Source: Macrostomum lignano
Taxonomy: Eukaryota
Length of the DNA: 64,000 bases
Direction: 5' to 3'
Assembly: GCA_002269645.1 (NCBI GenBank)
Contig: NIVC01003356.1
Span: forward strand, 38,615 to 102,614
Position 1 is the stretch's first letter; each line of letters starts with the position of its first letter. The notes beneath the pieces were generated by a model, which searched no databases, was not told where the DNA came from, and saw nothing but the letters and a program-made list of their open reading frames with translations. Both the position numbers and the translations under genes were made by a program. Positions 1 through 62,614 of this stretch are shown here, piece by piece.

Positions 1-29
1 AGATCTGGAGGGGTTTAGTTTAGTATCTC

Positions 30-39732: not shown

Positions 39733-40044
39733 TTCCCAACTAATAGTTATATTCTCTTAAATTTGGAAAACATTTCAAATGAGGCAAAATGCTTGCACTG
39801 TTGGTGGATAAGCTGGATAGATCCTTTTAAAGGGAGGAAAGGAGGAAAATCTGTCATTGAAACCTGAGCCTTTTTGGCGTTTAAAAACTTTCTCTTTTCA
39901 CCGAGCTTTTCGTAATGCAAGGAATTAAGAAGCAAGTCAAAATTTTCATTTAAAAAGCCTTTTTTATTACTACTGGTAGTAGCAAAGCTAGTGTAGTAGT
40001 ATCATGAATTTCTTCAGTTAACTAACTACAGCACAGGGCCTGGC

Positions 40045-40260
40045 CCAGAAACTAATAACCTGGGAGGCTGGCCCAGCAACTGAGGATCTGGGAGGCTGGC
40101 CCAGTAACTGGGGATCTGGGAGGCTGGCCTAGCAACTGAGGATCTGGGAGGCTGGCCCAGCAACTGAGGATCTGGGAGGCTGGCCCAGCAGCTGAGGATC
40201 TGGGAGGCTGGCCCAGCAACTCAGGATCTGGGAGGCTGGCCCAGCAACTGAGGATCTGGG
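40045..40260 (+). repeat. 28-bp repeat (GGGAGGCTGGCCCAGCAACTGAGGATCT), short block before LHPP exon 3
   Basis: Same unit and orientation as 42220-44600. Confidence 0.93.
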
Positions 40261-40302
40261 ATGCGCAGCATTGATAAAACCCCCCTCAAACCGATCCTCC
40301 AG

Positions 40303-41510: not shown

Positions 41511-42219
41511 TCGAATCTGGTTATTACATTTTAAATTGATTTTTCAGTAAAATTACGCTCGGAATTATCTATAAACAAAAATAATTTACCTTTCTTACCC
41601 TTAGGATTTTACGGTAGACAAACAATTATTCTGTTTGCAGTTTATCTTCAGCTAAACTTTCGCAATATTGCATATCACCTTTATACTGAATGTAAAACAC
41701 GGTCATGGTTATCAGTTAGTTTTTATACGCTATTGTGACTTTTGGTGCATGGATATCATATTGTTTTTGTCAAATTGAATAATTTCTCGATATTATCGCC
41801 TCCTTTCATTGAAGCATTGTTTGTAGTAGATACAGTTTTACTACATGTACGAGTACAAGAGAAACATACCATTCACCAAAAATTCCTGCGTAACATGTAC
41901 GCTACTAACGCCAGCTGCAGATCTGCGTTCAGGTACTTACACGTACATGTATGTACTTTATCTTGTAGTGCAGCTGTCTAATTGCATGGGATCCATTTCC
42001 CTCCCGTGCACTCCAATTGAGGAGCCCAGCTCGATAGGCTTGACCGGGTTAATTGCATATGTACGCTCGTACATGTACATTCTATCGAGACGGTATGCTC
42101 ATTGGGATTATTATTAATATATTTAGCCGCATGTACACTCTCGTATGCCTGGGGGTTGGACCTCAAATCCTTGCATGTACATGTAATAGTGCGATTTGTT
42201 ATAATTGTGCCGATCTGAG

Positions 42220-44600
42220 AGACTGGCCCAGCAACTGGGGATCTGGGAGGCTGGTGGCCCAGCAACTGAGGATCTGGGAGGCTGGTCCAGCAACTGAGGA
42301 TCTGGGAGGCTGGCCCAGCAACTGAGAATCTGGGAGACTGGCCCAGCAACTGAGGATCTGGGAAGTTGGTGGCCCAGTAACTGAGGATCTGGGAGGCTGG
42401 TCCAGCAACTGAGGATCTGGGAGGCTGGCCCAGCAACTGAGAATCTGGGAGACTGGCCCAGCAACTGAGGATCTGGTAGGCTGGCCCAGCAACTGAGAAT
42501 CTGGGAGGCTGGCCCAGCAACTGAGGATCTGGAAGGCTGGCCCAGCAACAGAGGATCTGGGAGGCTGGCCCAGCAACTGAGGATCTGGGAGGCTGGCCCA
42601 GCAACTGAGGATCTGGGAGGCTGGCCCAGCAATTGAGAATCTGAGAGACTGGCCCAGCAACTGAGGATCTGAGAGGCTGGCCCAGCAACTGAGGATCTGG
42701 GAGGCTGGCCCAGCAACTGAGGATCTGGGAGGCTGGCCCAGCAACTGAAGATCTGGGAGGCTGGTGGCCCAGCAACTGAGGATCTGGGAGGCTGGACCAG
42801 CAACTGAGGATCTGGGAGGCTGGCCCAGCAACTGAAGATCTGGGAGGCTGGCCCAGCAACTGAGGATCTTGGAGGCTGGCCCAGCAACAGAGGATCTGGG
42901 AGGCTGGCCCAGCAATTGAGAATCTGAGAGACTGGCCCAGCAACTGAGGATCTGAGAGGCTGGCCCAGCAACTGAGGATCTGGGAGGCTGGCCCAGCAAC
43001 TGAGGATCTGGGAGGCTGGCCCAGCAACTGAAGATCTGGGAGGCTGGTGGCCCAGCAACTGAGGATCTGGGAGGCTGGACCAGCAACTGAGGATCTGGGA
43101 GGCTGGCCCAGCAACTGAGAATCTGGGAGGCTGGCCCAGCAACTGAGGATCTGGAAGGCTGGCCCAGCAACAGAGGATCTGGGAGGCTGGCCCAGCAACT
43201 GAGGATCTGGGAGGCTGGCCCAGCAACTGAGGATCTGGGAGGCTGGCCCAGCAATTGAGAATCTGAGAGACTGGCCCAGCAACTGAGGATCTGAGAGGCT
43301 GGCCCAGCAACTGAGGATCTGGGAGGCTGGCCCAGCAACTGAGGATCTGGGAGGCTGGCCCAGCAACTGAAGATCTGGGAGGCTGGTGGCCCAGCAACTG
43401 AGGATCTGGGAGGCTGGACCAGCAACTGAGGATCTGGGAGGCTGGCCCAGCAACTGAGGATCTGGGAGGCTGGCCCAGCAACTGAGGATCTGGGAGGCTG
43501 GCCCAGCAACAGAGGATCTGAGAGGCTGGCCCAGCAACTGAGGATCTGGGAGGCTGGCCCAGCAACTGAGGATCTGGGAGGCTGGCCCAGCAACTGAAGA
43601 TCTGGGAGGCTGGTGGCCCCGCAACTGAGGATCTGGGAGGCTGGCCCAGCAATTGAGAATCTGGGAGGCTGGCCCAGCAACTGAGAATCTGAGAGACTGG
43701 CCCAGCAACTGAGGATCTGAGAGGCTGGCCCAGCAACTGAGGATCTGGGAGGCTGGCCCAGCAACTGAGGATCTGGGAGTCTGGCCCAGCAACTGAAGAT
43801 CTGGGAGGCTGGTGGCCCAGCAACTGAGGATCTCGGAGGCTGGCCCAGCAACTGAGGATCTGGGAGGCTGGCCCAGCAACTGAGGATCTGGGAGGCTGGC
43901 CCAGCAACTGAAGATCTGGGAGGCTGGTGGCCCAGCAACTGAGGATCTGGGAGGCTGGCCCAGCAACTGAGGATCTGGGAGGCTGGCCCAGCAATTGAGA
44001 ATCTGAGAGACTGGCCCAGCAACTGAGGATCTGAGAGGCTGGCCCAGCAACTGAGGATCTGGGAGGCTGGCCCAGCAACTGAGGATCTGGGAGGCTGGCC
44101 CAGCAACTGAAGATCTGGGAGGCTGGTGGCCCAGCAACTGAGGATCTGGAGGCTGGACCAGCAACTGAGGATCTGGGAGGCTGGCCAGCAACTGAAGATC
44201 TGGGAGGCTGGCCCAGCAACTGAGGATCTTGGAGGCTGGCCCAGCAACAGAGGATCTGGGAGGCTGGCCCAGCAACTGAGGATCTGGGAGGCTGGCCCAG
44301 CAACTGAGGATCTGGGAGGCTGGCCCAGCAACTGAAGATCTGGGAGGCTGGTGGCCCCGCAACTGAGGATCTGGGAGGCTGGCCCAGCAATTGAGAATCT
44401 GGGAGGCTGGCCCAGCAACTGAGAATCTGAGAGACTGGCCCAGCAACTGAGGATCTGAGAGGCTGGCCCAGCAACTGAGGATCTGGGAGGCTGGCCCAGC
44501 AACTGAGGATCTGGGAGTCTGGCCCAGCAACTGAAGATCTGGGAGGCTGGTGGCCCAGCAACTGAGGATCTCGGAGGCTGGCCCAGCAACTGAGGATCTG
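42220..44600. repeat. 28-bp minisatellite (~83 copies, with 31-bp variants) between the convergent LHPP and ValRS 3' ends
   Basis: Source of the 811-917 aa pseudo-ORFs. Confidence 0.97.
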
Positions 44601-45128
44601 GAAGGTCGCCGGCAGCAAATGAACGAAAATTCAAATACTTGACTTATTTGTCCAGAGGCTGCAATCAACAAACTCTTATTTTTAGTCAGCAATCTTCCAA
44701 TCGAAGATTCAGCACACGCAGTTATATTCAAGGCAATTGCATTTTCAAATCAATGTTTTGAGCGGAGCACGACTGAGTGATGGCGGCACATTTTTTATAC
44801 TTTGCAAATACATTAGCCAGTCGCAATTAATTGAATCAAGTGGTCCATTTTCTAATTGTCTTTTTCTAATGTCAATTCAACAACTTTCGAATAAAATATC
44901 AGTAATTAGATTACAGTAAGTAGCATAAAAATTTTTATTACTAATTAAACAAAAATGTTTATTTATGGCGCAAATTAACAAGACTTTACCTGGGGAGGGG
45001 TTGATTGGTGATAAATTAAGTTTCTAAATCCTGTAATTGTAAATATTCCCAGTTTTATAGCTGTCACCAAAAAGGAGTCATGGGAATTAATAAGGTCAAA
45101 TTAAGACGGTAATTATTGCCCAGTCTCC

Positions 45129-46136
45129 TCAGGCAAGCGGCTCCCGGTGCTTCATCAGATCCAAATACCGTCTAACATTGCCAAACTCGGTCAATGTTGT
45201 CACGGCAACATCGCTAGAAACCTGTTGAAGAAGACTTGCAACAGCCGCATCGGCAGCACTGAGCGACTCGCCGACCAGAAAAGTCCTGGTAGCCAAGTAG
45301 CCATTCAGCATTCGGGCAAAGTCTACAAATTGACAGCGGCCAATAGAAGAATGCCGGCTGTTAGTTGCCATGGCAACCACGGCTGGCAATAGGCGGCTAA
45401 TAGCCAGGCTAATCCATTGGTCTCTGGCGCAATGCACACCCGGCTGCAGTCGGTGGCACAGGCCAATCAAATCAAAGATTGCATCATTGGGGTTGGAACT
45501 ATCGAATGTCGCTACGAATTCGGCATTTCCATTTGGCATATTGTTACAGTTGATTAGCCGGTCTCGAGTCTGCTTGTCGGCCTCTTGAACAGTAGTGATC
45601 TTCTGCCCGTTGCCAAGCAGATTAGCAATGCACTTGGCCGCTTCAGTCAGTAGATAAGCGGATTTGCTATTCGACAGGCGAATCAGCTGCTTGATGCCGC
45701 CGCTGCCGCCAGACACAACAGCTGACTCGGCCAGCTTGGCCCGTTCGGTCAGCAGCTTCTCCAGCTTGTCTCTGTTGGCCGCACGGACAGCCTCCGGCAT
45801 GCTCGCCGAGCCCGGCGCGTCAAGCTGTTCGCGAAGCTTCGCCACCTGCTTGTCGAGGGTGTCCAGCCGGGATGCCAGCCGGGCGGCCTCCTTGGCGAGG
45901 TCAACAATGCCAGCTAGGACCAGGTGCAGTTCAACCCGATCGTTCAGGGTGTTCATAGCGCAGGCTTCGGTTGGACGACTGCTGCTGCACTCGATGATGG
46001 AGCAGTTGGAGAGGCTGCACAATGGTTTCTGCTCTCGTTGTACTAGAGCAGCGAGTTCGGAATCTGCTGTGACCAGAATGGCGCGAGTTCGCTGGCGTCC
46101 AGTCAGCTGGTATTCACCGCGGAGACTGCGGACTGC
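45129..46136 (-). CDS. VARS1: Valyl-tRNA synthetase exon 8: end of anticodon-binding domain, coiled-coil arm and C-terminal GST-like domain
   Basis: Acceptor CTGTAG|; AVRSLRGEY; coiled coil LAKEAARLASRLDTLDKQVAKL; SGGSGG linker; GST_C-like LNGYLATRTFLVGESLSAAD and FGNVRRYL; stop at 45129. Confidence 0.88.
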   Translation of the reverse strand, partial: AVRSLRGEYQLTGRQRTRAILVTADSELAALVQREQKPLCSLSNCSIIECSSSRPTEACAMNTLNDRVELHLVLAGIVDLAKEAARLASRLDTLDKQVAKLREQLDAPGSASMPEAVRAANRDKLEKLLTERAKLAESAVVSGGSGGIKQLIRLSNSKSAYLLTEAAKCIANLLGNGQKITTVQEADKQTRDRLINCNNMPNGNAEFVATFDSSNPNDAIFDLIGLCHRLQPGVHCARDQWISLAISRLLPAVVAMATNSRHSSIGRCQFVDFARMLNGYLATRTFLVGESLSAADAAVASLLQQVSSDVAVTTLTEFGNVRRYLDLMKHREPLA

Positions 46137-46209
46137 CTACAGGGCGGTATGGTAATAATAATATAGTAGTAATAGCTTACAGGCTTTCTTAGAAATGCTT
46201 CAAAAATGA

Positions 46210-46340
46210 ATCTTATACTGATTACTAGAAATGGGAGACTGATTACTAGAAATGGGATACTGATTACTAGAAAATGGATACTGATTACTAGAAATGGGAT
46301 ACTGATTACTAGAACAGATTCAAGATTCTTAGAAATTGTG
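46210..46340. repeat. 21-bp repeat in ValRS intron 7 (TGATTACTAGAAATGGGATAC)
   Basis: About 5 copies. Confidence 0.88.
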
Positions 46341-46423
46341 TTCATGAAATACTGTTTGTTAGAAACGTCAAGTATCAATGGTGCTTATTAGGACAAAAGT
46401 CGAAATATGCACTTTATTCTCAC

Positions 46424-46756
46424 CTTAATAATTTTGATCAGCTGATCAACCTCAGTCTCGCAGTGCTCTTTACGATAGCAGTGAAACTCGCCAATCGAAG
46501 GGAACTCAGCAACACACAGGCTGGGCTCGGAGAACAGCGGCGTCGGCGGATGTCGAGGCAATCGCTGCCAGAGCTCCTCAGTGATGAAGGGCATGAATGG
46601 ATGAGCCAGTCGCAGGCCCGTGTCGCAGCAGATGTACAGCGTGTGCCTGATCAAGTCGGCGTCGTATTCGGGGTCCTTTAAGGCGAGCTTCGAGTACTCC
46701 AGGTACACATCGCAGAAGTCGTACAGCCAGAAATTGTAGCAGGCGGTGGTGGCCGA
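46424..46756 (-). CDS. VARS1: ValRS exon 7 (anticodon-binding domain)
   Basis: SATTACYNFWLYDFCDVYLE...LAHPFMPFITEELWQRLP; canonical AG/GT, phase 0/0. Confidence 0.95.
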
Positions 46757-46769
46757 CTGGAGTGGACAG

Positions 46770-47350
46770 GGGATTGGGGAATCTCACCATTAGGGATTGG
46801 GGATTCTCACCATTAGTAATTGGGGATTCTCAACATTAGTGATAGGGGAATCTCACTATTGGGGATTGGGGAATCTCACCATTAGTGATTGGGGAATCTC
46901 ACTATTGGGGATTGGGGAATCTCACCATTAGTGATTGGGGAATCTCACTATTGGGGATTGGGAAATCTCACCATTAGGGATTGGGGAATCTCACTATTGG
47001 GGATTGGGGAATCTCACCATTAGGGATTGGGGAATCTCACTATTAGGGATTAGGGATTCTCACCATTAGGGATTGGGGAATCTCACCATTAGGGATTGGG
47101 GAATCTCACTATTGGGGATTGGGGAATCTCACCATTAGGGATAGGGGAATCTCACTATTAGGGATTGGGGATTCTCACCATTAGGGATTGGGGAATCTCA
47201 CCATTAGGGATTGGGGAATCTCACTATTTGGGATTGGGGAATCTCACCATTAGGGATTGGGGAATCTCACCATTAGGGATTGGGGATTCTTACCATTAGA
47301 GAGCGGGAAATCTTACCATTAGGGTAGGGGAATCTTACTATTAGGGTAGG
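46770..47350. repeat. 23-24-bp minisatellite in ValRS intron 6 (GGGATTGGGGAATCTCACCATTA)
   Basis: Directly visible. Confidence 0.95.
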
Positions 47351-47408
47351 AGAATTCTCGCCAATGATGCAAAGGGACTATCATGCTATAACTAAGGTCC
47401 ACACAAAC

Positions 47409-47783
47409 CTGGAAGTCGTAGGCCTCCAATCCTTTGTCAATAGCTCGCACAGTGTAGGTCAGCCTAGACAGAATCCATTGATCCAACGAGCTGCCAATTC
47501 GATGCGGCAGCCGAGTCTCGGGCAGTTGAAACGAATCGCCCAGACACATAAGCACATAGCGTACAGCTTGCCACATCTTGTTGCAGAAGAACCGATATCC
47601 TTGAACTCGTAGCACGTCCAAGTTGATATCGCGTCCTTGAGCGCTGTAGGCGCAGAGAGCGAAGCGCAGGGCGTCGGTGCCGCACTCAGGAATGCCATTG
47701 GGATAATCTTCCTTCTGGCACTGGCGAGCTCGATCAATCTCGCGACGGTCCAGGTTCGAATCTTCGAGTTGAGCGTGAAGAGA
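47409..47783 (-). CDS. VARS1: ValRS exon 6
   Basis: YPNGIPECGTDALRFALCAY...GYRFFCNKMWQA; CCACAG| and |GTTTGT. Confidence 0.95.
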
Positions 47784-47824
47784 CTGTGGGATTTTTTGGA
47801 TAACAAACTTCTATGTTAAAGGTG

Positions 47825-49420
47825 AATCTTTGAGTAGCTTATCTGAGCAGTTTTTGAGTAGCTTATCTAAGGAGTTATTAAGTAGCTTATTTGAGTAGTT
47901 TTTGAGTAGCTTATCTGAGCAGTTTTTGAGTAGCTTATCTGAGCAGTTTTTGAGTAGCTTATCTGAGCAGTTTTTGAGTAGCTTATCTAAGGAGTTATTA
48001 AGTAGCTTATTTGAGTAGTTTTTGAGTAGCTTATCTGAGCAGTTTTTGAGTAGCTTATCTAAGGAGTTATTAAGTAGCTTATTTGAGTAGTTTTTGAGTA
48101 GCTTATCTGAGCAGTTTTTGAGTAGCTTATCTGAGTAGTTTTTGAGTAGCTTATCTGAGTAGTTTCTGAGTAGCTTATCTGAGTAGTTGTTGAGTAGCTT
48201 ATCCGAGTAGTTTCTGAGTAGCTTATCTAAGTAGTTTCTGAGTAGCTTATCTGAGTAGTTTCTGAGTAGCTTATCTGAGTAGATTCTGAGTAGCTTATCT
48301 GAGTAGTTTCTGAGTAGCTTATCTAAGTAGTCTCTGAGTAGCTTATCTGAGTAGTTTCTGAGTCGCTTATCTGAGTAGTTGTTGAGTAGCTTATCTAAGT
48401 AGTTTCTGAGTAGCTTATCTGAGTAGTTTCTGAGTAGCTTATCTGAGTATTTGTTGAGTAGCTTATCTAAGTAGTTTCTGAGTAGCTTATCTGAGTAGTT
48501 TCTGAGTAGCTTATCTGAGTAGTTGTTGAGTAGCTTATCTAAGTAGTTTCTGAGTAGCTTATCTGAGTAGCTTATCTGAGTAGTTGTTGAGTAGCTTATC
48601 TAAGGAGTTATTAAGTAGCTTATTTGAGTAGTTTCTGAGTAGCTTATCTGAGTAGTTGTTGAGTAGCTTATCTGAGTAGTTTCTGAGTAGCTTATCTAAG
48701 TAGTCTCTGAGTAGCTTATCTGAGTAGTTTCTGAGTCGCTTATCTGAGTAGTTGTTGAGTAGCTTATCTAAGTAGTTTCTGAGTAGCTTATCTGAGTAGT
48801 TTCTGAGTAGCTTATCTGAGTATTTGTTGAGTAGCTTATCTAAGTAGTTTCTGAGTAGCTTATCTGAGTAGTTTCTGAGTAGCTTATCTGAGTAGTTGTT
48901 GAGTAGCTTATCTAAGTAGTTTCTGAGTAGCTTATCTGAGTAGCTTATCTGAGTAGTTGTTGAGTAGCTTATCTAAGGAGTTATTAAGTAGCTTATTTGA
49001 GTAGTTTCTGAGTAGCTTATCTGAGTAGTTGTTGAGTAGCTTATCTGAGTAGTTTCTGAGTAGCTTATCTGAGTAGTTTCTGAGTAGATTATCTAAGTAG
49101 TTTCTGAGTAGCTTATCTGAGTAGTTTCTGAGTAGCTTATCTGAGTAGTTGTTGAGTAGCTTATCTGAGTAGTTTCTGAGTAGCTTATCTGAGTAGTTTC
49201 TGAGTAGCTTATCTAAGTAGTTTCTGAGTAGCTTATCTGAGTAGTTTCTGAGTAGCTTATTGAGTAGTTTCTGAGTAGCTTATCTGAGTAGTTGTTGAGT
49301 AGCTTATCTAAGTAGTTTCTGAGTAGCTTATCTGAGTAGTTTCTGAGTAGTTGTTGAGTAGCTTATCTAAGTAGTTTCTGAGTAGCTTATCTAAGTAGTT
49401 TATGAGTAGCTTATCTGAGC
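47825..49420. repeat. 24-bp minisatellite in ValRS intron 5 (GAGTAGCTTATCTGAGTAGTTTCT)
   Basis: Directly visible. Confidence 0.96.
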
Positions 49421-49474
49421 ATATTGCAAACAATATTATGCAGTATAATCCCAAAATCCAAAAATGACACGAAC

Positions 49475-49777
49475 CTCAAGCGTGATGCCATTAATGACGT
49501 CCATTGGATCGATGACGTTGCCCTTAGATTTGGACATTTTCTGTCCATGAGAGTCGCGAACAATAGCGTGAAGATACACGTAGCGAAAGGGCAGCTTGTC
49601 CATCAATGTTAATCCGGCCATAACCATTCGGGCCACCCAGAAAAACAGGATGTCGTGTCCAGTCTCCAAAAGAGTGCCAGGATAGAATGTGCTCAATTCT
49701 AGAGTTTGATCTGGCCAATCGAATACGCTAAATGGAAATAGTTGAGAGCTGAACCAGGTGTCCAAGACGTCCGGGTC
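49475..49777 (-). CDS. VARS1: ValRS exon 5 (KMSKS motif)
   Basis: [39 protein letters not shown]. Confidence 0.97.
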
Positions 49778-49889
49778 CTGCGAGTGAAATTGTGAAGTTA
49801 CTTTAGAGCTTATCTTGAAATACTTCATTAATGAAAAGAAATCGGTAGGTAAAAAAGAGTCCTGTAAGTGACATCCTGAGATTCTCTGG

Positions 49890-50510
49890 TGGGGTCATAT
49901 GACACTCTGATGATTTCTCTTGGGTGAGGGGGTCATATGACACTCTGATGATTTCTCTTTGGTGAGGGGGTCATATGACACTCTGATGATTTCTCTTGGG
50001 TGAGGGGTCATATGACACCCTGATGATTTCTCTTGGGTGAGGCGGTCGTATGACTCCCCAATGATTTCTCTTGGATGAGGGGGTCGTATGACTCCCTCAT
50101 GATTTCTCTTGGATGAGGGGGTCGTATGACTCCCTGATGATTTCTCTTGGGTGAGGGGGTCGTATGACTCCCTGATGATTTCTCTTGGGTGAGGGGGTCG
50201 TATGACTCCCTGATGATTTCTCTTGGTGAGGGGGTCGTATGACTCCCTGATGATTTCTCTTGGGTGAGGGGGTCGTATGACTCCCTGATGATTTCTCTTG
50301 GGTGAGGGGGTCGTATGACTCCCTGATGATTTCTCTTGGGTGAGGGGGTCGTATGACTCCCTCATGATTTCTCTTGGGTGAGGGGGTCGTATGACTCCCT
50401 GATGATTTCTCTTGGGTGAGGGGGTCGTATGACTCCCCAATGATTTCTCTTGGATGAGGGGGTCATATGACTCCCCAATGATTTCTTAAGTGAGGGGTCA
50501 TATGACTCTC
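49890..50510. repeat. 38-bp minisatellite in ValRS intron 4
   Basis: GTCGTATGACTCCCTGATGATTTCTCTTGGGTGAGGGG units. Confidence 0.95.
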
Positions 50511-50582
50511 GCAGAAGGGGGTCATGAGATTCCTTATTGAATCACGGGATGGGTGGCTGGCTGCCAACACCTTTTTATTTAC

Positions 50583-50901
50583 CTGCTTTAAAGTCAGCCG
50601 GCCTTCAGCGGCCTCTTTAGGCCACTTGGCCCTGGCCTGAGCCATCGCCTCGTCATGGTTGCGCCTAATCAGCCAGGAGTCGCCGCTATTGGGGTCGCAT
50701 CCGCCTGCCGGTTTACCGTCGATCAGCGGCAGCCAAGCCGGCACCTGATGGCCCCACCAGAGCTGGCGGCTGATGCACCAATCGCGACAGTTGCTGAGCC
50801 ATTCGCGCCAAACTCGATTGTGATATTCGGGTATGAGCTGCAGTTCGCCAGATTCCACCGCGTCTAAGGCGCGCTTGGCCATGCCTTCGCAGCGGACGTA
50901 C
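50583..50901 (-). CDS. VARS1: ValRS exon 4
   Basis: (W)YVRC...DWCISRQLWWGHQVPAW; phase 2/0 junctions are consistent. Confidence 0.96.
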
Positions 50902-50924
50902 CTAGAGTGCAAGATTGAAGGCGA

Positions 50925-52160
50925 TTCTTCATAGAAATCTGGAGCGATTTTTTATAGAAATCTGGGGCGATTCTTCATAGAAATCTGGGGCGATTTTTCA
51001 TAGAAATCTGGGGCGATTCTTCATAGAAATCTGGGGCGATTTTTCATGGAAATCTAGGGGCGATTCTTCATAGAAATCTGGGGTGATTCTTCATAGAAAT
51101 CTGGGGTGATTCTTTATAGAAATCTGGGGTGATTCTTCATAGAAATTTAGGGGCGATTCTTCATAGAAATCTGGGGTGATTCTTCATAGAAATCTGGGGT
51201 GATTCTTTATAGAAATCTGGGGTGATTCTTTATAGAAATCGGGGGTGATTCTTCATAGAAATTTAGGGGCGATTCTTCATAGAAATCTGGGGTGATTCTT
51301 CATAGAAATTTAGGGGCGATTCTTCATAGAAATCTGGGGTGATTCTTCATAGAAATCTGGGGTGATTCTTTATAGAAATCTGGGGTGATTCTTCATAGAA
51401 ATTTAGGGGCGATTCTTCATAGAAATCTGGGGTGATTCTTCATAGAAATCTGGGGTGATTCTTTATAGAAATCTGGGGTGATTCTTTATAGAAATCTGGG
51501 GTGATTCTTTATAGAAATCTGGGGTGATTCTTCATAGAAATTTAGGGGCGATTCTTCATAGAAATCTGGGGTGATTCTTCATAGAAATCTGGGGTGATTC
51601 TTTATAGAAATCTGGGGTGATTTTTCATAGAAATCTGGGGTGATTCTTCATAGAAATCTGGGGTGATTCTTTATAGAAATCTGGGGTGATTTTTCATAGA
51701 AATCTGGGGTGATTCTTTATAGAAATCGGGGGTGATTCTTTATAGAAATCTGGGGTGATTCTTTATAGAAATCGGGGGTGATTCTTCATAGAAATTTAGG
51801 GGCGATTCTTCATAGAAATCTGGGGTGATTCTTCATAGAAATCTGGGGCGATTCTTCATAGAAATCTGGGGTGATTCTTCATAGAAATCTGGGGTGATTC
51901 TTTATAGAAATCTGGGGTGATTCTTTATAGAAATCGGGGGTGATTCTTCATAGAAATCTGGGGTGATTCTTCATAGAAATCTGGGGCGATTCTTCATAAA
52001 AATCTGGGGCGATTATTTATAGAAATCTGGGGTGATTCTTCATAGAAATCTGGGGCTATTTTACATAGAAACAGGGGCGATTTTTCATAGAAATCTAAGG
52101 TGATTAGAAATCTAAGGCGATTTTTATGTAAATCTGGGGCGATTATTACAGAAATCTGGG
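50925..52160. repeat. 23-bp minisatellite in ValRS intron 3 (GATTCTTCATAGAAATCTGGGGT)
   Basis: Directly visible, about 52 copies. Confidence 0.96.
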
Positions 52161-52311
52161 CAATTTTTCATCGAATTCAGGATTTTTAAAATAGAAATAG
52201 AACTTTGGGGCGAACTTTTTAATTCTGAAACCCTACGATTGTTAAATATTAAAGTCAAGTTATCACTGCACAACTTTTATAGTGTAAAACAAGCATGATA
52301 AAAGAACAAAC

Positions 52312-52683
52312 CATTGCGGCTTAATTAGCGGTTCAATAACGTCTTTGCTGCGACTACAAATTGGCACAACCATAGGATTGTCCTGCTCTCCAATCCAGAG
52401 ACCCTTGGCTTTCAAAGCGTCCACAACGCGTTGGCGAGCATCGAACCGGGGCAAACCGGAGAACTCGCCGCAATTGTCGGCGATGCGACCGTCCTCGCCG
52501 ATGACTGTGATAAAGGCGAGATTGTTACGAATGCCGCATTCAAAATCGTTGGTGTCGTGAGCCGGGGTGATTTTCACCGCGCCTGTGCCGAACTCGCGCT
52601 CGACAAAGCTGTCAGCAACGACGCGCATCTCCCGGTCGGGGAAGAACGGATGAACGATACGACGGTCGTGCATGTGCTTGTAT
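52312..52683 (-). CDS. VARS1: ValRS exon 3 (CP1 editing domain)
   Basis: FGTGAVKITPAHDTNDF, CSRSKDVIEP; phase 2/2. Confidence 0.96.
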
Positions 52684-52724
52684 CTAGGGGGAGCGGAGAG
52701 TTGGTTTCGAATAATTTAATTGCT

Positions 52725-53200
52725 ATTATCGATACATATCGGCCGAATACATTACATAATGTAATCCAATACGCTGATAAAGTGATTTTCGATACATATC
52801 GGCCGATTTTATAATCTAACATAAAACGCTGATAAAGTGATTTTTGATACATATCGGCCGATTTTACAATCTAATATAAAACATTGATAAAGTGATTTTC
52901 GATACATATCGGCCGATTTTACGATGTAATCCAATACGCCTATAAATTAATTTTCGATACATATCGGCTAACTGTACTATATAATGTAACACGCTGATAA
53001 AGTGATTTTCTATTCATATCGGCCAATCGACAATCGATCTAGATATGTGATTTTCGATACATATCGGGCAATTTTACCAATGATCTACTCTGATAATGAT
53101 TTTTTGATACATAACGGCAAGCTAATTTAAAATGACGCTTTCTAGTACATCATAACCTGTGCAAACTCTATTTTCGATACATTCGATACGGCAAAATTTC
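52725..53200. repeat. Degenerate ~55-60-bp repeat in ValRS intron 2
   Basis: Recurrent GATAAAGTGATTTTCGATACATATCGGCCGA. Confidence 0.8.
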
Positions 53201-53247
53201 AAACACAATCAACACAATTCTACAAGTAATTAATAACCGCAACCTAC

Positions 53248-53738
53248 CTAGGATCTTCCGGGTGCACAGCCACAGCAGTGTCGCCCAGCATAGTTTCCGG
53301 CCGAGTAGTAGCCACGACAATCTTCTCATCCGAATCTGCTAACGGATAGGCAAAATGGGTGAGCACGCCGAACTCAATGGGCTGCTCGTAGCCGGGCACG
53401 TGAAGCGCTTTCCTGCCAGTCAGTTCCTTCTTTTCCACTTCGATATCGGAGATGGCGCTGCGCAGGGTGCAGGACCAGTTAACCAGCCGGTTGGCCCGGT
53501 ACATCAGGCCCATGCCGTGCATGCGAACGAAGGCTTCAATAACGGCCCGACTCATTTTTGGTTCCATTGTGAATCGAGCCCGTGACCAATCGCATGAGCA
53601 GCCGAGATGACGCAATTGATAATAGATTCGATCGCCTTTCTCGTTGCGATAGCGCCAGATTTCTTGTTCGAATGCTTCCCGGCCGAGGTCGTGTCGGGTC
53701 AGGCCGCGCTCTCGCATCAGCTTCTTTTCCACTACAAC
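53248..53738 (-). CDS. VARS1: ValRS exon 2
   Basis: [48 protein letters not shown]. Confidence 0.97.
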
Positions 53739-53749
53739 CTGCGGCAGTT

Positions 53750-54345
53750 GGATATTGTGAGAGTGCTCAGACTTTGAGACTACTTAGATTATTGACTTGC
53801 CGATATTGTGGCAGTGCTCGGATTTTGAGAGTTCTAAGATTGTGGGAACGCTCAGATTGTGAGAGTGCTCAGATTGTGGGAGGGCTGAGATTATGGAAGT
53901 TCTAAGATAATGGGAGGGCCGAGATTGTGGAGTGCTCAGATTGTGAAAGTTCAAAGATGGTGGGAGTGCTCAGATAGTGAGAGTTCTAAGATTATGGGAG
54001 TGCTCAGATTGTGAGAGTTCTAAGATTGTGGGAGTGCTCAGATTGTGAGAGTTCTAAGATTGTGGGAGTGCTCAGATTGTGAGAGTTCTAAGATTGTGGG
54101 AGTGCTCAGATTGTGAGAGTTTTAAGATTGTGGAATGCTCAGACTGTGAGAGTTCTAAGATTGTGAGAGTTCTAAGAGATCGCGGGAGTGCTGAGATTAT
54201 GGTAGGGCCGAGATTGAGGATGTGTAGATTTTTAGAGTTCGACTATTGTGGGAGTGCCGAGATTGTGAGAGTGCTCAGGTTGTGGGAGTGTCAAGCTAAT
54301 GAGTGCTCAGATTGTGGGAGTGCCGAGATTGTGGGATTGATGAGA
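53750..54345. repeat. 34-bp (2x17) minisatellite in ValRS intron 1
   Basis: GATTGTGAGAGTTCTAAGATTGTGGGAGTGCTCA units. Confidence 0.9.
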
Positions 54346-54398
54346 TTTTAAGAGTTGATGAAACTGTGGGATCTGAAATGGCACCAGCCAACACAAAC

Positions 54399-54920: not shown

Positions 54921-57031
54921 GGTATTTCTTGTTCAAACTAATGATTGTAGCAAAAATTGTTGTTTTATTCTTGCATCAAAAGAGAATTGATCATTTCCAG
55001 TTTTAGGAAAAATTAAATTTCAAGTTAACCAGCTTGAATTGTAGTCATGCATGTTCAACTTTCTGAATTTTACCTGGCTGGTGCAACATAGTTCTTCATC
55101 AAACTGCAATATACATCCATCTGTCGAGATTTTTTGCAATATTGCTTTTCTCTGCTTGTAATTCAAGTTTTTTCTCTTTCTTGCCTCAACCATTTAATGC
55201 CTTTTTTAATTTATTTGTTTCTGTGATCATAAGTTTTTTTCCTTAACTTTCCTATATTTTTTCTTTGTTTTATAGATTTAATATTCAAGCTCTTGTCTTG
55301 TGAACAACATTTAAAAAAGTTTAGTGCTTGATTGTTTAATTATATACCTACTTGCCTTGGCTGGCATATCAACCAGCTGATGATATCTAGATACCAATAG
55401 TGTTTCATTGTAAATTATCACTATGGCTCTTATAATCCTATAAAAAATTTAGAAAAATAGGTATTTATACTATTTTAGTAAAATAAATGCTATTTTTATT
55501 AAAAAAAGAGTCATTTATAAACAACTTTTTATATTTACAAGCACACTCTTAGCTTTTTTTAATTGTAAAATTTATACAAAAGACAAAGAAAATACAAGTT
55601 ATATTAAAAAGACAATTTTTCTATTTAAAAAATAATGCATATTGATTTTTTATCAACTATCTTATTATTTATAAAAAATTATTTTACCATTGAAAATTTC
55701 ATTTTATATAGTTACATTCATATGAGCTAATAATATTAGATCTTTAGAAACTAAAGTATAAAAAATATATATTTAATATTAAGGTCATTCTTTATTGCTA
55801 AATTATCAGTTATAGTCAATAATTGTAAAGCAAAAAGTATCTGTACTATTAATTAGTATTGGAATATCTTATATTCTACTATTAGGCCCTAATAAATGCA
55901 TTAGGAATTTGTAAAAAGTGTTTTAAGACTCTAATGTCTGTAAAAGGCTTCACTTTTAGTAGATCAAATTTCTTTAAAAAATAATTTCAAAATTGCATTA
56001 TTTTGTTATATCATACACATATTTGAAATATTTTATATATTTTGTATATTTTATATGTTGTTATGATTAAAAAAGTAAGCAAAAAGTTTATTATAAAATA
56101 GAAGCCAACTGAAAGCCTAACCAAATAAACTGTTAAATGATAACTATTCTTGTAAATTGCAGTTCTTTCAAGCATGCTAATAATTTCTCCAGTTGTTTGT
56201 TCTTTTTAGAGACAAAATTCAATTAGCCTCAGGGCTAGTATTCACTCTTATGTTACTTCTTTTGAATAGTAGATAGCAACCTAAAAAGAGCACCAAAAAG
56301 GGATTTGATCCATTCTTTAGAATCTAGCAACTTGCCTTAGAAGGCAGAACATCTACCAAAAGGGTAGACTAATCTAGATATATAGTCTAAAAACTTTGCC
56401 CTAGGGCAGTAAACTTAGCAAAGTGTAAGCCATGATCCTCTAATCCCAGGAATGCCCAAGACTGAAAGAAAACTCTTTAGAGGAATAGAATAAGGGGATA
56501 TATATAAGAATAGAGTAGACAGTACCATAGGATTATTCAGGCCAATAAATATTTATATATGCTACTAGTAGATAAACACATGCTACCAATAGATAAATAT
56601 ATATGCTACCAAAGGATAAATACATGAAAGAAGTACATAAATATTAAGATAAATAACAACTTTAGCATTAATAACAATAGGATTACTCTAGAAGGCAGAA
56701 GTAACCCCTGTCCTCTATATCAACTTAGGGCCTAGTGATAGCAATGAGATCATTTTATAGGATAGAACCATAACACATTAACATTTATAACATCTTTTTT
56801 TCTTGTCTTGAATAATCTTGGGTTTTTACAAAAACTTGGGAAATTATTTTTAAATTATAAAAAAACCAAAACAATTTAGTATTTTAGAGTACTAATGTAT
56901 ATCAAACATGAAAATTTTGTTTTTTTGCTTTTTTAATTTCAATCAATTTTTGTGTCTATCATGAAAAAAAACAATCTACAATTGTTTAGCTTTCATATAC
57001 TAATATAGTATCAAAATTTTCTCATTTACTT

Positions 57032-60000
57032 CAGTGGCGCGTCCAAGGGGGCCAGGGAGGGCCTGGGCCCCCTTGTTAGGCCATAGGCCCCCCTGTGGCC
57101 CCCCCACTTTCAGTTCTGACTTCTGAACGTCGAATTTTTTCAAAAAAAATTGAAAAACCTTTTTATAATTTTAATTTTAGAAACAATACTACTATACTAG
57201 AAGTTTTTACACGAGCATAACTTTACATGGGTACAATATTCTTTACTCTCTGATCTGATAGTATGGCAAATTTCGTTTCGTTTGTTTTTATAGTATCTGT
57301 CGGTGTTTTTGGTTTTGTCTAACTTTAATTATAAAGTGCATTGCCTCTCAGACTTTATTGTTTTTATCTAACTGTTCAGTCTATATGGCTGTATCCTTCC
57401 AACCCCCAACCCCCTCCCCCACGCGTATAGCCTAACACTTGCACTGGGACAGGGAAAGGAGGGATAGGACAGACAGAAAGGGAAGGGAGAAGCGTGCTGA
57501 TAAATGTACATTTGGACAGGGACAAAGAGTTAAACCATCATACATTCAGGCAGTGTGTAAAAGACTACAGAGCATTGCCCCTCTGCCCCTTAAGATTTAA
57601 GTCACACTTTAGCTACTGCTCTCTTAAGTCTTAAGGTTCAAAAAAACGGAAATGTATTTTTAAGAATTGAATTAAAGAAGCCTGGCCAACAATGCAGAGG
57701 CCTGATATTCGAAGTTTTTTAAAAAGACCTAGCTCAGACCCGCGAGAAGATGATGAAGGTCCAGGCGAAAAAACTGATAGCCAGGCGAAAAGGCATAAGG
57801 ATCAACCAAGTGCCATCTCTACGATTGCGGATCAGGAGTCTGAACAGGATGCTCAACTGACTGGCTCTGAAACAAATTTTCCTGGCACTCCTGTTCTAGT
57901 TGAGACAGCTACCGCTGCCACTGCTACAGAGTCAGCCTCAGACAGTAGAACAATTGAGCAACCTTCTTCGAAGGCCCTATGTGATATTTCCCAGAATAAG
58001 GACGATCCACCCTGTCAGCCATTTTTGCGGAACTACCCAAAATCAGTTGGAACTTCAGGCAGTAAGTCGACAGTTATTTATATAATACTGTTTGTGCTAA
58101 TGGTTACTAGTGGCTAGTGCTAGTGGCTAAGGCTAGCTATACTGATATAGACGTATTTTTTAAAAGTTTGTAAAAATCAATGTAAAAATTTGTAAAAATC
58201 CTCCACAGGAACGGATAAGGCAAAGCAAAAGTCCCGTTCATTTCAATTCTCGTGGTTTGAGACTTACAAGTGGCTTGAGTATTTGCAAATGAAGGATTCT
58301 GCTTTTTGCTTTCCCTGCCGCCACTTCGCGCCTCCATCTATGCAAGAAGAGCCATCTTTTACTACTCAGGGATTCCGCAACTGGAAAAATGCTCAGTGTC
58401 AGGATGCAGGCTTTAAAAAGCATGCCCGCTCTCATTGCCACAGTTTAGCAATGCAAGCATGGTGTGACTACAAAGTAATGAAAGACACTGAAGGAACTGT
58501 ATTGAAACAGCTTGATGCTACGTACAAAGCTAAGGTAGCTGAGAACAGGCACTTCATTAAGTGTGTAGGAGAAGTATTACTTCTTACAGCAACTCAAAAC
58601 ATCGCCCAAAGGGGGCATCGCGAAAATGATGAGCAAGTAAATCCTGGAAACTTCAAAGTATTATTGAAGCTGATTGGCAGACATGACGAAATAATAAAGA
58701 AGATATCTGAACAGAAGAAGAATGCAAAGTACACGAGTGACACAATTCAAAATGAAGTTATTAACATTCTGGCAGACATGGTCCGTGATGTTGTTGTAAA
58801 CGACATCCAAGAAGCCAAATATTTTTCTGTGATTGTAGATGAGGCCAAGGATATATCTAAGGTTAAAATGATCTCCTTAATCATTCGTTTCTACAAGCAT
58901 TCAGAAGGAGTGCAGGAAGTCTTTATGGAATTTAAACCTGCTTCAGGACTATCTGCCCAATCACTTGCTAACTCACTAGTAGAAAGCCTTCAGAAATATG
59001 GCCTAGACACCGGATTTCTAGTTGGCCAAGGCTATGATGGAGCCTCAGTGATGAGCGGAGTTCATAATGGGCTCCAAAAGCTGATTCGAGACAAGTCGGA
59101 ACTCGCAATTTACATACACTGCTATGCACACTGCCTGAATCTATGTCTTGTTGATGCTTGCAAATCAGTGCCCTAGATTGAGGACTTCTTTTCTCTTGTG
59201 CAGAAGCTCTACTGTTTTATGTCAAACTTAGTTGTTCATCCTCAGTTTATTGACCACCAGAAGAAACTCTATCTTGGAAAGCCAGCCTTAGAGCTTCAGC
59301 GCCTCTCAGACACGAGATGGGCCTGCAGAGAGAAGGCGTGCAACAATATTCTTAATCGTATTGGCGCGATTCTCTCCGTTTTAAAAGAAATTAAGGAGCA
59401 GGACTCCGGAGATCGTGTTGTTGAAGCCACTGGAATTTTAGCTCAGTTGACCCGAAGCTTCGTACTAAGGCTAGTTCTTATGTGCGAAATTCTGACTCGC
59501 ACAAAGGCACTATCGGATTTCCTTCAACAAAAAGATTTAGACCTTGCTTCTGCTGTTGATTTGGCACAGTCAACAATCACCAAATTCCAAACTTTGCGCG
59601 ACAGCAACGAATTCTTAGAGAAAGTATTTCTGGACTCCCAGCAGTTAGGTAATGAGTGGAATATACCTGAGCCAGAACCAAACAGACAAACAAAACGCCC
59701 AAATAAGCGCTTCGATCAGTTTGTAACTTTTGAAAGGGATCATGTCGCTCAGCGCAACTCTGAATCTGGAGCAAACAGATTTCGAATTAATGTATATCTA
59801 CCGGTGATCGACTGCCTATTGTCGGAAATGCGACAAAGATTTGACCATGAAACAGCTGTTCTCTTTAAGGGAATTGGTTCTCTAAAGCCAAACTCGGACT
59901 GTTTTTTGGACGCTTCACAGCTGGAGGATTTAGGAGGCCTATTCAAATGTGACCAAGAGTTCCTGAAACTTGAGGTAATTCAAGTAAAGCGTCTGATTGA

Positions 60001-61605
60001 GAGAAAGGGCAATGGCAGCTTGACTGATTTAAAAGCATTTGCTGAGATGTTGCACCCATTCAGAGAGGTTTTCCCTGAGTTGTACAAGCTTTTCATCATA
60101 TGCTTGACTATTCCAGTAACAACAGCATCAGCGGAGCGCAGTTTTTCGAAAATGCGCCTGATCAAGACGTACTTGAGAAGTCGAATGTCATCTTCTTGAC
60201 TTTCGAATCTGGCTCTTTTGTCGATTGAAAATGAGCGAGCATCAATAATTGATCTTGACTGTTTTGTTGATGAATTTGCGTCTGCCCATTCTAATAGGCG
60301 AATAAGTCTAACATAATTTTATGACTTATTTTGCTCGCTAAGACAATTTACATTTGCTACGGCCACTTGACTAATGTATGTACATGTATAGTATTACAGT
60401 ATATGTATGTTGCTTTTACGTTTTTATTCTGTACATACTTCATTTATGTACGTTACATTACTTGTCATTTTTCACTTCATTGTCATTGCTACTAATTGCT
60501 ACCTGTTTCATGTATCGTTCAAAGGTATACGAATGTACGTGTGTATGCACATTGATCGAATTGGCTGATTTGTTTTAAATTATGTATATATATTAAATAA
60601 TATGTATATATGCATGCATTCATGTTAAGGTCTGTTGTTATGTTATGTACCGGTATGGTGATTGTGATGAAGTGGGTGGTAAAGTGTTATTGTAAATTCA
60701 TATTCAAGTTCATTCTACGCTGACGTGTTTTCACTAAACCTATCATCAATCATCAAATGTACTTTATGCACCATGCATGCATACTCAGCAAGACAAGTGT
60801 CCCCATCCGTTTCTTAGGAGAATTTTGTCTCTCAGTTGAGTGGCGAATTAATCCAACAGTTCGACCATAGACAAATTACAATTACAAAAACTGTCTATCC
60901 ATAGATATCTAGCTTAGATTTCTATGGTCTGGTCTATCAGACTCTATCTCGATGTATCTCAATGCGCATACATGTATCAGAATAAATGTCTGTGGCCCAG
61001 AGTCTCCAATTTGTCACCAAGGACAACTTGATAACTGTTATCAAGTTGTCCTTGTTTGTCACTCAAACAGAGAGATGAAATTCTGTCAAGAGAAGTGTGG
61101 AAAATTTTGTCTTGCTGGGTATATATCTATTATTAATGAGGTCATTGAAGAATGCATAAAAATTTTAAACGTCGGCATTTCTTATTTTTTATAATAATGA
61201 AGGTTCAATGTGTAGTAAATGCATGAAATCTTCCAAAGGAGTAACCAACGGAGTTTTTTGACGAGAATCTGCTGGAAAAAGTAACATGCATGCATTTGTG
61301 TTTAAAGTCTTCCAATTACAAAACTAAACAACTTGACAAAGCAAAAAATATTCAAAAGCATTTTCTTGGGCAAAAAAAACAAGAACCATTTAGTGATTTA
61401 GAATGTTCGTTTTTCTTAAATTAACTAAACAATTGCAATCATTCATTGCGAGGTATTTTTGGATGTCATTTTTGCTTTTCGATGAAAATTTTCTCTTACA
61501 ATACTTGTAATTAAAAAATGTACACTCTATTCGAGATGTTGCCCTTTCAGTTTTTACTGGGCCCCAACTGGGCCCCCCCATCCTGAAACCTCTGACGCGC
61601 CCCTG
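57032..61605 (+). mobile_element. Full-length hAT DNA transposon (4574 bp)
   Basis: TIRs CAGTGGCGCGTC and GACGCGCCCCTG (1 mismatch); perfect 8-bp TSD ATTTACTT at 57024-57031 and 61606-61613; GC-rich subterminal GGGCCCCCC motifs; internal transposase. Confidence 0.95.
57692..60316 (+). pseudogene. hAT transposase (ZMYM1-like/TTF zinc-finger type); join(57692..58061,58209..60316), two in-frame stops
   Basis: Intron GTAAGT..CCACAG. Motifs: WFETYKWLEY..AFCFPCRHF (TTF-type Zn finger), VIVDE, GQGYDGA, CYAH, TRW, TTASAERSFS (hATC). TAG at 59174-59176 and TGA at 60197-60199, with in-frame continuation after both. Confidence 0.88.
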
Positions 61606-62249
61606 ATTTACTTTGATTATAAGCAAGCAACAAGCTTTGTGGCAAAGTGCTATCAAATTGTTTTATGTGATGATGCCTCTAATTTTTAAGACAATCTAAT
61701 TACAATTTGAGATTAGATTAGCAACAGTTTACTACATATAAGTAACAATCCAATGCCAAGGCCACATCTATTATAAGCTAGGAAGTGGTTGCCCACAATC
61801 TGCTTAGGCCTACATTGCTAAGACAATTGCTATTGTGAAAGCCATGATTTGCCATGATCCTTGGACTTGGCAGCTGAGCATAGAATGGTGCCAATATCTG
61901 TCAATGCATAGACTAGTAAAGGCTGACTGGTACTGGCACTCTGTGGTTTGCAAGACTTAGCCACTTGTCATTAAGGTACAGTTGTACAAAAGGTAAAGCA
62001 AGTTTAACAATATGATTTTAGTTTAACAAGTTGATTTGTTAGTTTAACATGTTGTTTTAGTTCTAGTTTAACAAGATGATTTGTTAAACTAGATCAAAGA
62101 CTATGATTCTAGTTAGACTATTGTCTTTTAGATAAGACAAGATTTTCATTTTTAGTATATGGACTAGCAATCTTTGCCCCCCAATGGGGGACATCTGGAT
62201 AGAATATTTGTTTTCTTTACAAGTAACAAATAGACAACAAAAAAATAAC

Positions 62250-62605
62250 AGACATTTCCTCCAAAAAAACATCCCAAGACAGCAAGCATCTCCAGACAGC
62301 ATGCAAGCATCTCCCAGATAGCAAGGATATCTCAGATAGCAAGCATCCCCCAAATAGCAAACATCCCCCAGATAGCAAGCATCCCCAGATAGCAAGCCCT
62401 TCTACCCCAAATACAATAGCAAGCACCCCCAAATACAATCTCAAGAGCATGTTCCAGATAGCAAGCATCACCCAGATAGCAACCCCTCTCCAAAAATAGC
62501 AAGTACCCCTCCCAAAAATAGCAAGTACCCCTCCCCTCTAAGAGCAAGCTTCTTGCCTCCCTAATATCAAGCATCCCCAGATAGCATGCAAGCATACCCC
62601 AGATA
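62250..62605. repeat. Degenerate 18-bp repeat (CAGATAGCAAGCATCCCC)
   Basis: Directly visible. Confidence 0.85.
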
Positions 62606-62614
62606 GCAAGAATC

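Follow-up and report, generated by a model that had tools for sequence, protein, structure and literature searches.

The window analysed here (64,000 nt of the Macrostomum lignano genome, GenBank assembly GCA_002269645.1, contig NIVC01003356.1, positions 38,615 to 102,614 of the forward strand) contains on its minus strand the gene for the cytoplasmic valyl-tRNA synthetase (ValRS). The coding frame of this gene runs on past the tRNA-binding coiled coil, through a Gly/Ser-rich linker, into a C-terminal extension. The extension is accurately described as the linker, about 90 residues without recognised fold, and then a domain of about 100 residues of the GST_C (C-terminal glutathione transferase-like) type, which by its sequence is of the subclass of the gamma subunit of elongation factor eEF1B (eEF1B-gamma) and of the N-terminal domain of vertebrate ValRS (ValRS-N). 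A GST-like domain appended to ValRS is known; its place at the C-terminus is new. Its role, to which a probability of roughly 0.45 to 0.5 is assigned, would be to tether ValRS to a guanine nucleotide exchange factor (GEF) subunit of eEF1B.

Gene model and domain layout

The ValRS gene extends from 54920 to 45129 (minus strand, start to stop codon) and has eight exons (Mlig030791 family), the borders of which were set from open segments and sequence anchors:

Exons 1-4, minus strand: 54920-54399, 53738-53248, 52683-52312, 50901-50583
Exons 5-8, minus strand: 49777-49475, 47783-47409, 46756-46424, 46136-45129

All seven introns are GT..AG, and the joined coding sequence of 3723 nt is in frame and codes for 1240 aa. 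The class I signatures LHIGHAL and KMSKSKGN are present in the product. In the full protein, Pfam domains follow in the order tRNA-synt_1 (aa 94-725, 451 bits), Anticodon_1 (aa 770-924, 120 bits), Val_tRNA-synt_C (aa 984-1042, 27.3 bits, cut-off 25.9), and GST_C (aa 1181-1236); tRNA-synt_1_2 was also found. In the database search, the core was 54-58% identical to other metazoan ValRS. By its signatures, Pfam content, and identity, the product belongs to the eukaryotic cytoplasmic class Ia ValRS, and the gene is a genuine cytoplasmic ValRS of M. lignano.

The start codon has a Kozak-like context (ACCATGG), an in-frame stop precedes it by 12 nt (four codons), and the public M. lignano ValRS models share this start Met. 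The protein begins directly with a Lys-rich segment, which in vertebrate ValRS separates the GST domain from the core. No GST-coding sequence was found upstream of exon 1 when 54921-64000 (~9 kb) was searched by tblastn with vertebrate ValRS GST domains, and in the whole window the C-terminal extension was the sole match to these queries, besides low-complexity matches in a satellite. With the Lys-rich start, the upstream in-frame stop, and the empty tblastn result, the plain N-terminus without GST domain described in the first-pass annotation of this DNA is confirmed. The vertebrate-type layout of N-terminal GST, Lys-rich linker, and core does not apply to M. lignano ValRS, in which GST_C follows the coiled coil.

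Exon 8 (46136-45129, minus strand) is preceded by an AG acceptor and forms a single open frame of 335 codons with a TGA end. It encodes the end of the anticodon-binding region, the coiled-coil arm, the linker AVVSGGSGG, and then the extension, with 196 extra codons at 45719-45132 (588 nt). The features of this part of the gene are as follows:

45726..45902, minus strand: coiled-coil tRNA-binding arm, aa 984-1042 (Pfam PF10458, 27.3-30.8 bits, cut-off 25.9)
45696..45722, minus strand: Gly/Ser-rich linker AVVSGGSGG, aa 1044-1052 (translation)
45438..45695, minus strand: first half of the extension, aa 1053-1138, no recognised fold (AlphaFold2, hhalign, Pfam)
45132..45437, minus strand: predicted GST_C-like helical domain, eEF1B-gamma / ValRS-N class, aa 1139-1240 (Pfam, profile, tblastn, AlphaFold2/Foldseek)
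45129..45131, minus strand: TGA stop of the fused frame (direct reading)
44958..44963, minus strand: AATAAA, likely poly(A) signal, 165 nt past the stop (direct reading)

Neither a stop codon nor an ATG nor a splice junction occurs in the linker region. Three other metazoan ValRS (P0003, P0030, and P0048) end a few residues past the helix equivalent to the M. lignano arm. The open frame of ~195 aa past the coiled coil and through the linker, as first annotated, was thus found in frame, in a single exon, and with right coordinates, and the strings quoted for it (AVVSGGSGG, RDQWISLAISRLLPAV, LNGYLATRTFLVGESLSAADAAVASLL, and FGNVRRYLDLM) are all present in the translation of exon 8.

GST_C identity of the last 100 residues

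Pfam GST_C (PF00043) matched the extension alone with 26.8 bits and the full protein with 22.3 bits (gathering cut-off 20.7), and GST_C_3 (PF14497) matched the extension alone with 23.3 bits (cut-off 21.6). A ValRS-N profile built from 35 vertebrate ValRS N-terminal domains scored 32.5 bits over extension residues 101-185, against 7.6 bits for the best of 1000 shuffles, and the extension was paired with this vertebrate profile at 92% probability by hhalign. In tblastn, residues 89-183 of the ValRS of the lizard Elgaria were 35% identical over 95 residues at 45419-45162. Core motifs of GST_C are kept in the extension, namely QW...LP, with QW where the first GST_C helix begins, RTFLVGE with an S-x-x-D N-cap box (SxAD) behind it, and NVRRY.

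The best PDB sequence match of the extension is human eEF1G (eEF1B-gamma) with E = 0.009. GST domains of EPRS follow at E = 0.6-0.8, and chains of AIMP3, AIMP2, and MetRS were absent from the PDB sequence search at E <= 10. The Pfam family Arc1p_N_like scored 19.9-23.3 bits, below its cut-off of 27, and by these searches the extension does not belong to the GST families of the multisynthetase complex (MSC) type (MetRS-N, EPRS-N, AIMP2-C, AIMP3, Arc1p-N). An exhaustive HMMER search of 1.84 billion representatives returned, besides poor M. lignano models, only GST domains of the eEF1B-gamma type, among them a chytrid eEF1-gamma, tandem eEF1G copies of one protist, and the Daphnia protein P0131 (human eEF1G match with E = 7e-23). 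In BLAST, the extension scored 42-51 bits with Daphnia P0131, vertebrate ValRS-N, and eEF1G alike, and an origin from the flatworm's own eEF1G is not separable from one in a ValRS-N type ancestor.

When AlphaFold2 was given the extension aligned to 17 ValRS-N or eEF1G-like domains, the predicted local distance difference test score (pLDDT) was 73-93 over extension residues 95-190. With this model, Foldseek recognised 5jpo and 5dqs (human eEF1B-gamma GST-like domain) as top matches with probability 1.00, and the top five were all eEF1B-gamma. The eEF1B-gamma matches had TM scores of 0.47-0.49 over 113-135 columns, with a root-mean-square deviation of 2.7-2.9 A over 113 columns for the top matches. 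The best 50 of 552 PDB matches (E <= 10) were all GST or GST-like. The model, though partly circular, agrees with the sequence evidence.

Pfam and AlphaFold, which the first-pass annotation had proposed for the last ~200 aa, thus gave a GST_C match above cut-off and a predicted GST_C fold for the last ~100 residues, and the resemblance to eEF1B-gamma that it had seen is upheld by the best PDB match and by Foldseek. The resemblance to EPRS seen at the same time proved weak. The likeness to GST claimed for all ~195 aa is demonstrable for the last ~100 residues only, as the first ~90 showed no GST_N similarity and a low-confidence fold.

First half of the extension

No Pfam GST_N match was found in the extension at E <= 10. 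In hhalign, the first half scored 11.9 with the N-terminal halves of vertebrate ValRS GST domains, no better than shuffles (9.8 +/- 2.2), and its pLDDT was 30-48 even with the alignment. Hydrophobic strand-like and helix-like segments alternate along its ~90 aa, which would be compatible with GST_N, with no profile signal. This half could be a degenerate thioredoxin-like GST_N subdomain.

The only profile match in the first half is an armadillo-repeat-like motif, GGIKQLIRLSNSKSAYLLTEAAKCIANLLG, at 45629-45718 (minus strand, aa 1045-1074), right after the linker. The Pfam Arm score is borderline: the 196-aa query reached 21.4 bits and the full protein 16.4 bits (cut-off 20.6). An armadillo reading was dropped, as there is a lone borderline repeat and the low E-values against designed armadillo proteins are the same 30 residues summed over repeats. 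The motif is probably fortuitous.

Distribution and related appended domains

Protostome ValRS in the match list (molluscs, annelid, nemerteans, brachiopod, priapulid, crustaceans, most insects, nematode) are 1045-1075 aa long and without GST match, and so are the amphioxus and echinoderm ValRS in the list (1065-1091 aa), while vertebrate ValRS are ~1265-1280 aa long and have an N-terminal GST_C. The short protostome enzymes without GST would fit a separate, lineage-restricted acquisition, consistent with the independent gain proposed in the first-pass annotation. The fusion may be confined to M. lignano, to the genus, or be wider among flatworms.

No ValRS with the C-terminal GST-like domain was found outside M. 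lignano, in searches poorly suited to reveal one. The word-indexed search was apparently length-restricted, as a 446-aa query matched nothing longer than 773 aa (~1.7 times the query), and negatives with domain-sized queries may therefore miss longer proteins. The 335-aa exon-8 query gave no homologue, the identical 1240-aa proteins included, and this negative covers short proteins only. With the 446-aa query, all ValRS fragments matched end at the coiled coil (<= 60% of the query), and no fragment of a related Macrostomum covers the C-terminus; a 374-aa N-terminal transcript fragment (SRR28338164), 93% identical, is the sole trace of a related Macrostomum species. The exhaustive HMMER search cannot set the taxonomic spread, because 50%-identity clusters hide ValRS, full-length M. 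lignano ValRS included. No relative was found in the JGI metagenome contigs scanned with the extension.

In the literature searched, no description of a C-terminal GST-like domain on ValRS, or of flatworm synthetase architecture, was found. GST appendices of synthetases are described there as N-terminal, in agreement with the first-pass annotation; a review of ValRS architectures gives the N-terminal form only, and reports this N-terminal GST-like domain for Deuterostomia only (PMC4394549).

The vertebrate N-terminal GST domain and the M. lignano extension share the host enzyme, the GST_C subclass (31-42% identity over ~65-95 residues), and the motifs QW, RT[FY]LVGE-[ST]LAD, and NV[TR]R[WY]. 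They differ in position, as the M. lignano GST_C lies after the coiled-coil arm and the vertebrate GST before the Lys-rich tRNA-binding region, and in attachment, which is by a Gly/Ser linker in M. lignano and by a Lys-rich linker in vertebrate ValRS-N; the N-terminal halves are not alignable. M. lignano is a protostome, whereas the N-terminal form in the match list occurs only in vertebrates and in the spiralian-like P0048. Compared with eEF1B-gamma, the extension has in this protein its best solved-structure match by sequence and fold, and its nearest database relatives are of the eEF1G type. However, eEF1B-gamma is a free-standing subunit with a clear GST_N and a C-terminal EF1G domain, whereas in M. 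lignano a recognisable GST_C alone is present, as part of a synthetase. In C. elegans MetRS, a p43/Arc1p-like domain is fused at the C-terminus (PMC4394549). It provides a known invertebrate example of a synthetase with a complex-forming cofactor domain attached in cis at its C-terminus, but the appendix has an EMAPII/OB tRNA-binding fold, not GST, and the synthetase also differs from ValRS.

P0048 (JGI, 1298 aa) is a ValRS whose core is 70-72% identical to the nemertean, mollusc, and brachiopod enzymes. Its N-terminus has full GST_N and GST_C, far more eEF1G-like in appearance than the vertebrate domain. Its sequence suggests that an N-terminal GST was also gained by a lineage that is not deuterostome, at odds with the distribution in PMC4394549.

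Long ValRS isoforms of 1166-1190 aa in termites, cockroach, orthopterans, and stick-insect have, between their catalytic and anticodon-binding domains, an insert of ~115 aa. The carriers are P0030/P0255 (Cryptotermes secundus, XP_023727095.1), P0105 (Coptotermes), P0029 (Anabrus X1), P0061 (Schistocerca), P0100 (Periplaneta X1), and P0117 (Timema). Pfam GST_C_2 matched the insert (P0030, aa ~808-865) with 25.9 bits (cut-off 24.9), and its best PDB match is the N-domain of eEF1B-alpha in 5DQS (E = 1.6e-7), a partner of eEF1B-gamma. Logan transcript contigs of 3.8-4.6 kb encode the insert and confirm the long isoforms for termites; shorter X2 isoforms suggest that it is alternatively spliced. 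The polyneopteran insert may represent a second, undescribed route of tethering ValRS to eEF1B. It shares with the M. lignano domain the host enzyme and a GST_C-type eEF1B module, but it is internal and similar to the eEF1B-alpha N-domain, whereas the M. lignano domain is C-terminal and eEF1B-gamma-like.

On Daphnia pulex scaffold GL732525.1 (L004:5576-10644), the partial 193-aa protein P0131 is an eEF1G-like GST (E = 7e-23 to 5dqs_A) and, among single-domain proteins, the nearest relative of the flatworm extension. It follows AlaRS downstream at a distance of 303 bp, in the same orientation, and begins at an AG acceptor, with no Met. Phase-compatible donors are GG|GTTGGT, 8 nt before the AlaRS stop, and CTG|GTGAGT at the end of a small ATG-containing exon. 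If the first of these is used, the product would be a C-terminal AlaRS-GST fusion, and C-terminal synthetase GST appendices would not be unique to the flatworm.

It is conceivable, if rather doubtful, that coupling of ValRS with eEF1B arose in animals on at least three or four independent occasions, always with a different GST-like module of eEF1B type and at a different position. The cases would be an N-terminal eEF1B-gamma-like domain in vertebrates and separately in P0048, an internal eEF1B-alpha-N-like domain in polyneopterans, and a C-terminal eEF1B-gamma-like GST_C in Macrostomum; with the Daphnia GST downstream of AlaRS, a second synthetase may have to be added. In that case, selection for direct hand-over of Val-tRNA to eEF1A would be recurrent and the geometry of attachment flexible.

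Proposed function and alternative explanations

In the structures 5DQS and 5JPO, eEF1B-gamma's GST-like domain binds the small GST_C-like N-domains of eEF1B-alpha and eEF1B-delta. The M. lignano extension would be a lineage-specific appendix at the C-terminal end, attached in cis behind the tRNA-binding coiled coil by a flexible Gly/Ser linker, with its GST_C domain as a protein-protein docking module. The likeliest partner would be one of the eEF1B GEF subunits, eEF1B-alpha or -delta, contacted at its GST_C-like N-terminal domain. ValRS could in this way be tethered to the eEF1B/eEF1A complex from its C-terminal end, with the linker behind the tRNA-binding arm, and Val-tRNA would be passed directly to eEF1A. 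Since the extension falls in the eEF1B-gamma/ValRS-N subclass, tethering to an eEF1B GEF subunit would be the best-supported role; repeated gain of eEF1B-type modules by ValRS, at different positions, would make an eEF1B-related role more plausible.

Among synthetases, ValRS alone is known to form a stable association with the eEF1B exchange complex, and the reason is an open question (PMC9458455). [quoted passage not shown] In vertebrates, the GST domain of ValRS is needed for eEF1B binding, and channelling of Val-tRNA to eEF1A is ascribed to the complex (PMC4394549, PMC9458455); eEF1B binding by the M. lignano domain would follow by analogy with 5DQS and 5JPO and with Bec et al. 1994, as cited in the same two papers. 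With such a tether, M. lignano ValRS would be a positional variant of the vertebrate ValRS-eEF1H arrangement, and very probably one gained independently. If so, association of ValRS with eEF1B would be recurrent in evolution and not peculiar to vertebrates, and function would be independent of the attachment site of the tether. Transgenesis is established for M. lignano (PMC5730564), by which the domain could be deleted or tagged in vivo and channelling tested in a second, independent system.

Several points weigh against tethering to eEF1B. The GST domain may be incomplete relative to eEF1B-gamma, as its N-terminal half is not recognisably GST_N. The AlphaFold2 fold match is partly circular, because the alignment contained ValRS-N and eEF1G-like sequences, and a single-sequence run of the extension gave an unusable pLDDT of 38. 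As the searches gave no orthologue with the extension from any other species, conservation, and hence selection, is unproven. C. elegans ValRS is in the MSC without any GST domain (PMC4394549), and partners are for this reason not readable from domain content alone. Among the three genomic copies of the gene, the extension has four nonsynonymous and no synonymous differences in 196 codons and the core five and three in 1044 codons (12 variable codons in total; Fisher p = 0.04). With 16% of the length, the extension holds 4/9 of the nonsynonymous differences, which is a weak hint of weaker constraint than in the core; these counts are nearly without power, because the copies are ~99.7% identical.

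Docking into the MSC by heterodimerisation with the GST-like domains of MetRS, GluRS/EPRS, AIMP2, or AIMP3, instead of docking to eEF1B, is an unlikely alternative. GST-like domains are the currency of MSC assembly and C. elegans ValRS is a member of the complex (PMC4394549), and the weak matches to Arc1p_N_like and to the GST domains of EPRS point in the same direction. However, eEF1B-gamma and ValRS-N are clearly closer to the extension in sequence and fold, AIMP3, AIMP2, and MetRS gave no match in the PDB search at E <= 10, and the top five Foldseek matches were all eEF1B-gamma.

It is likewise improbable that, instead of a tether to eEF1B, the extension is a recent tolerated fusion with little or no function, which could have arisen by stop loss and read-through into a captured eEF1G-like or neighbouring gene fragment. 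Such an origin would be in line with an extension detected in no other species by the searches made and with its first half of no recognisable fold, and nonsynonymous differences are about four times as dense in the extension as in the core. Polycistronic precursors occur in M. lignano and could favour the joining of adjacent cistrons (PMC5730564). Nevertheless, the 588-nt frame is intact in three copies and the complete extension occurs also in a further entry (P0123), the motifs QW, RTFLVGE, SxxD N-cap box, and NVRRY are kept, and a clean Gly/Ser linker separates the domains; the near-identity of the copies leaves the substitution counts almost powerless here as well.

Copies of the gene and transcript support

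Public M. lignano ValRS are P0001, P0121, and P0122 (BOX15_Mlig030791g2, g1, and g3; GenBank/UniProt), each 1240 aa long. By eye, the product of the window is apparently identical to P0122 (g3) and differs from g2 in four and from g1 in seven residues. Exons of the three genomic copies are ~99.7% identical, and the window shares the junction and the intact 588-nt frame with two other contigs of assembly GCA_002269645.1, which have different intron repeat arrays. P0123 (1235 aa; UniRef/MetaClust only) holds the whole extension with an identical C-terminus. The public entries are labelled hypothetical protein or valine--tRNA ligase, and their precomputed domain lists omit GST_C; therefore, the architecture is easily overlooked.

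The GenBank models of the M. lignano assembly are not ab initio but come from genome-guided StringTie/TACO assembly of RNA-seq with TransDecoder open reading frames (ORFs), and the transcript assembly was divided at trans-splice and poly(A) sites that had been mapped by experiment (PMC5730564). As RNA-seq-derived models they give indirect transcript support for the fusion. The G+C content at third codon positions is 0.55 in the extension, in the range of the core exons, and the G+C content of the introns is 0.32-0.48; the composition of the extension is thus coding-like.

The M. lignano genome is repeat-rich and duplicated, with many trans-spliced polycistronic units (PMC5730564), and an assembly or annotation artefact, or a GST part that is a separate downstream trans-spliced cistron, was considered on this ground. 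Either is very improbable. The junction lies within one uninterrupted exon and is repeated on the two other contigs, and P0123 has the same C-terminus. Against a separate cistron further downstream speaks the lack of a start codon for the domain itself; no ATG stands at or close to the point where the extension begins, no stop precedes it, and the frame is continuous.

That ValRS has gained a catalytically active domain, a glutathione transferase or a redox enzyme, is most improbable, as only membership in the GST_C superfamily speaks for it, while no GST_N or G-site subdomain is detectable and the nearest relatives, eEF1B-gamma and ValRS-N, serve as structural or interaction domains (PMC9458455). 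A non-catalytic GST_C domain would be the best explanation of the sequence.

Other features of the window

Six of the seven ValRS introns (46137-54398) are largely filled by differing minisatellites found by Tandem Repeats Finder, and a short repeat of ~23 nt was seen by eye in intron 7. The arrays vary in length among the three genomic copies of the gene. Their positions in the window are as follows:

53805-54355: minisatellite, 17/68 nt
52725-53024: minisatellite, 55 nt
50923-52105: minisatellite, 23 nt
49891-50508: minisatellite, 38 nt
47831-49419: minisatellite, 24 nt
46770-47346: minisatellite, 23 nt

A 28-nt satellite of ~84 copies with a higher-order period of 199 nt occupies 42212-44605 (also 40040-40261) and begins ~500 nt downstream of the ValRS stop. 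In three frames, the array at 42212-44605 gives rise to spurious ORFs that exceed 800 aa. At the paralogous loci L001 and L002, an opposite-strand HAD-hydrolase gene is ~1.4-1.8 kb after ValRS.

On the plus strand, opposite to that of ValRS and upstream of it, two ORFs of 297 and 333 aa lie next to each other (58283-60199) and have the look of a hAT/ZBED-type transposase, with a zinc-finger-like N-terminus and a dimerisation-like C-terminus ending in ERSFS...LRSRM. Three more features were recognised by eye. A reverse-transcriptase fragment similar to that of non-LTR retrotransposons, with a YADD motif, is at 502-1905 (plus strand). An intronless ORF of 408 aa at 17815-19041 (minus strand) has a seven-transmembrane, GPCR-like look. 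The exon at 23350-24132 (minus strand) encodes a Gln-rich region and an ETS-domain-like end (...WEFKL).

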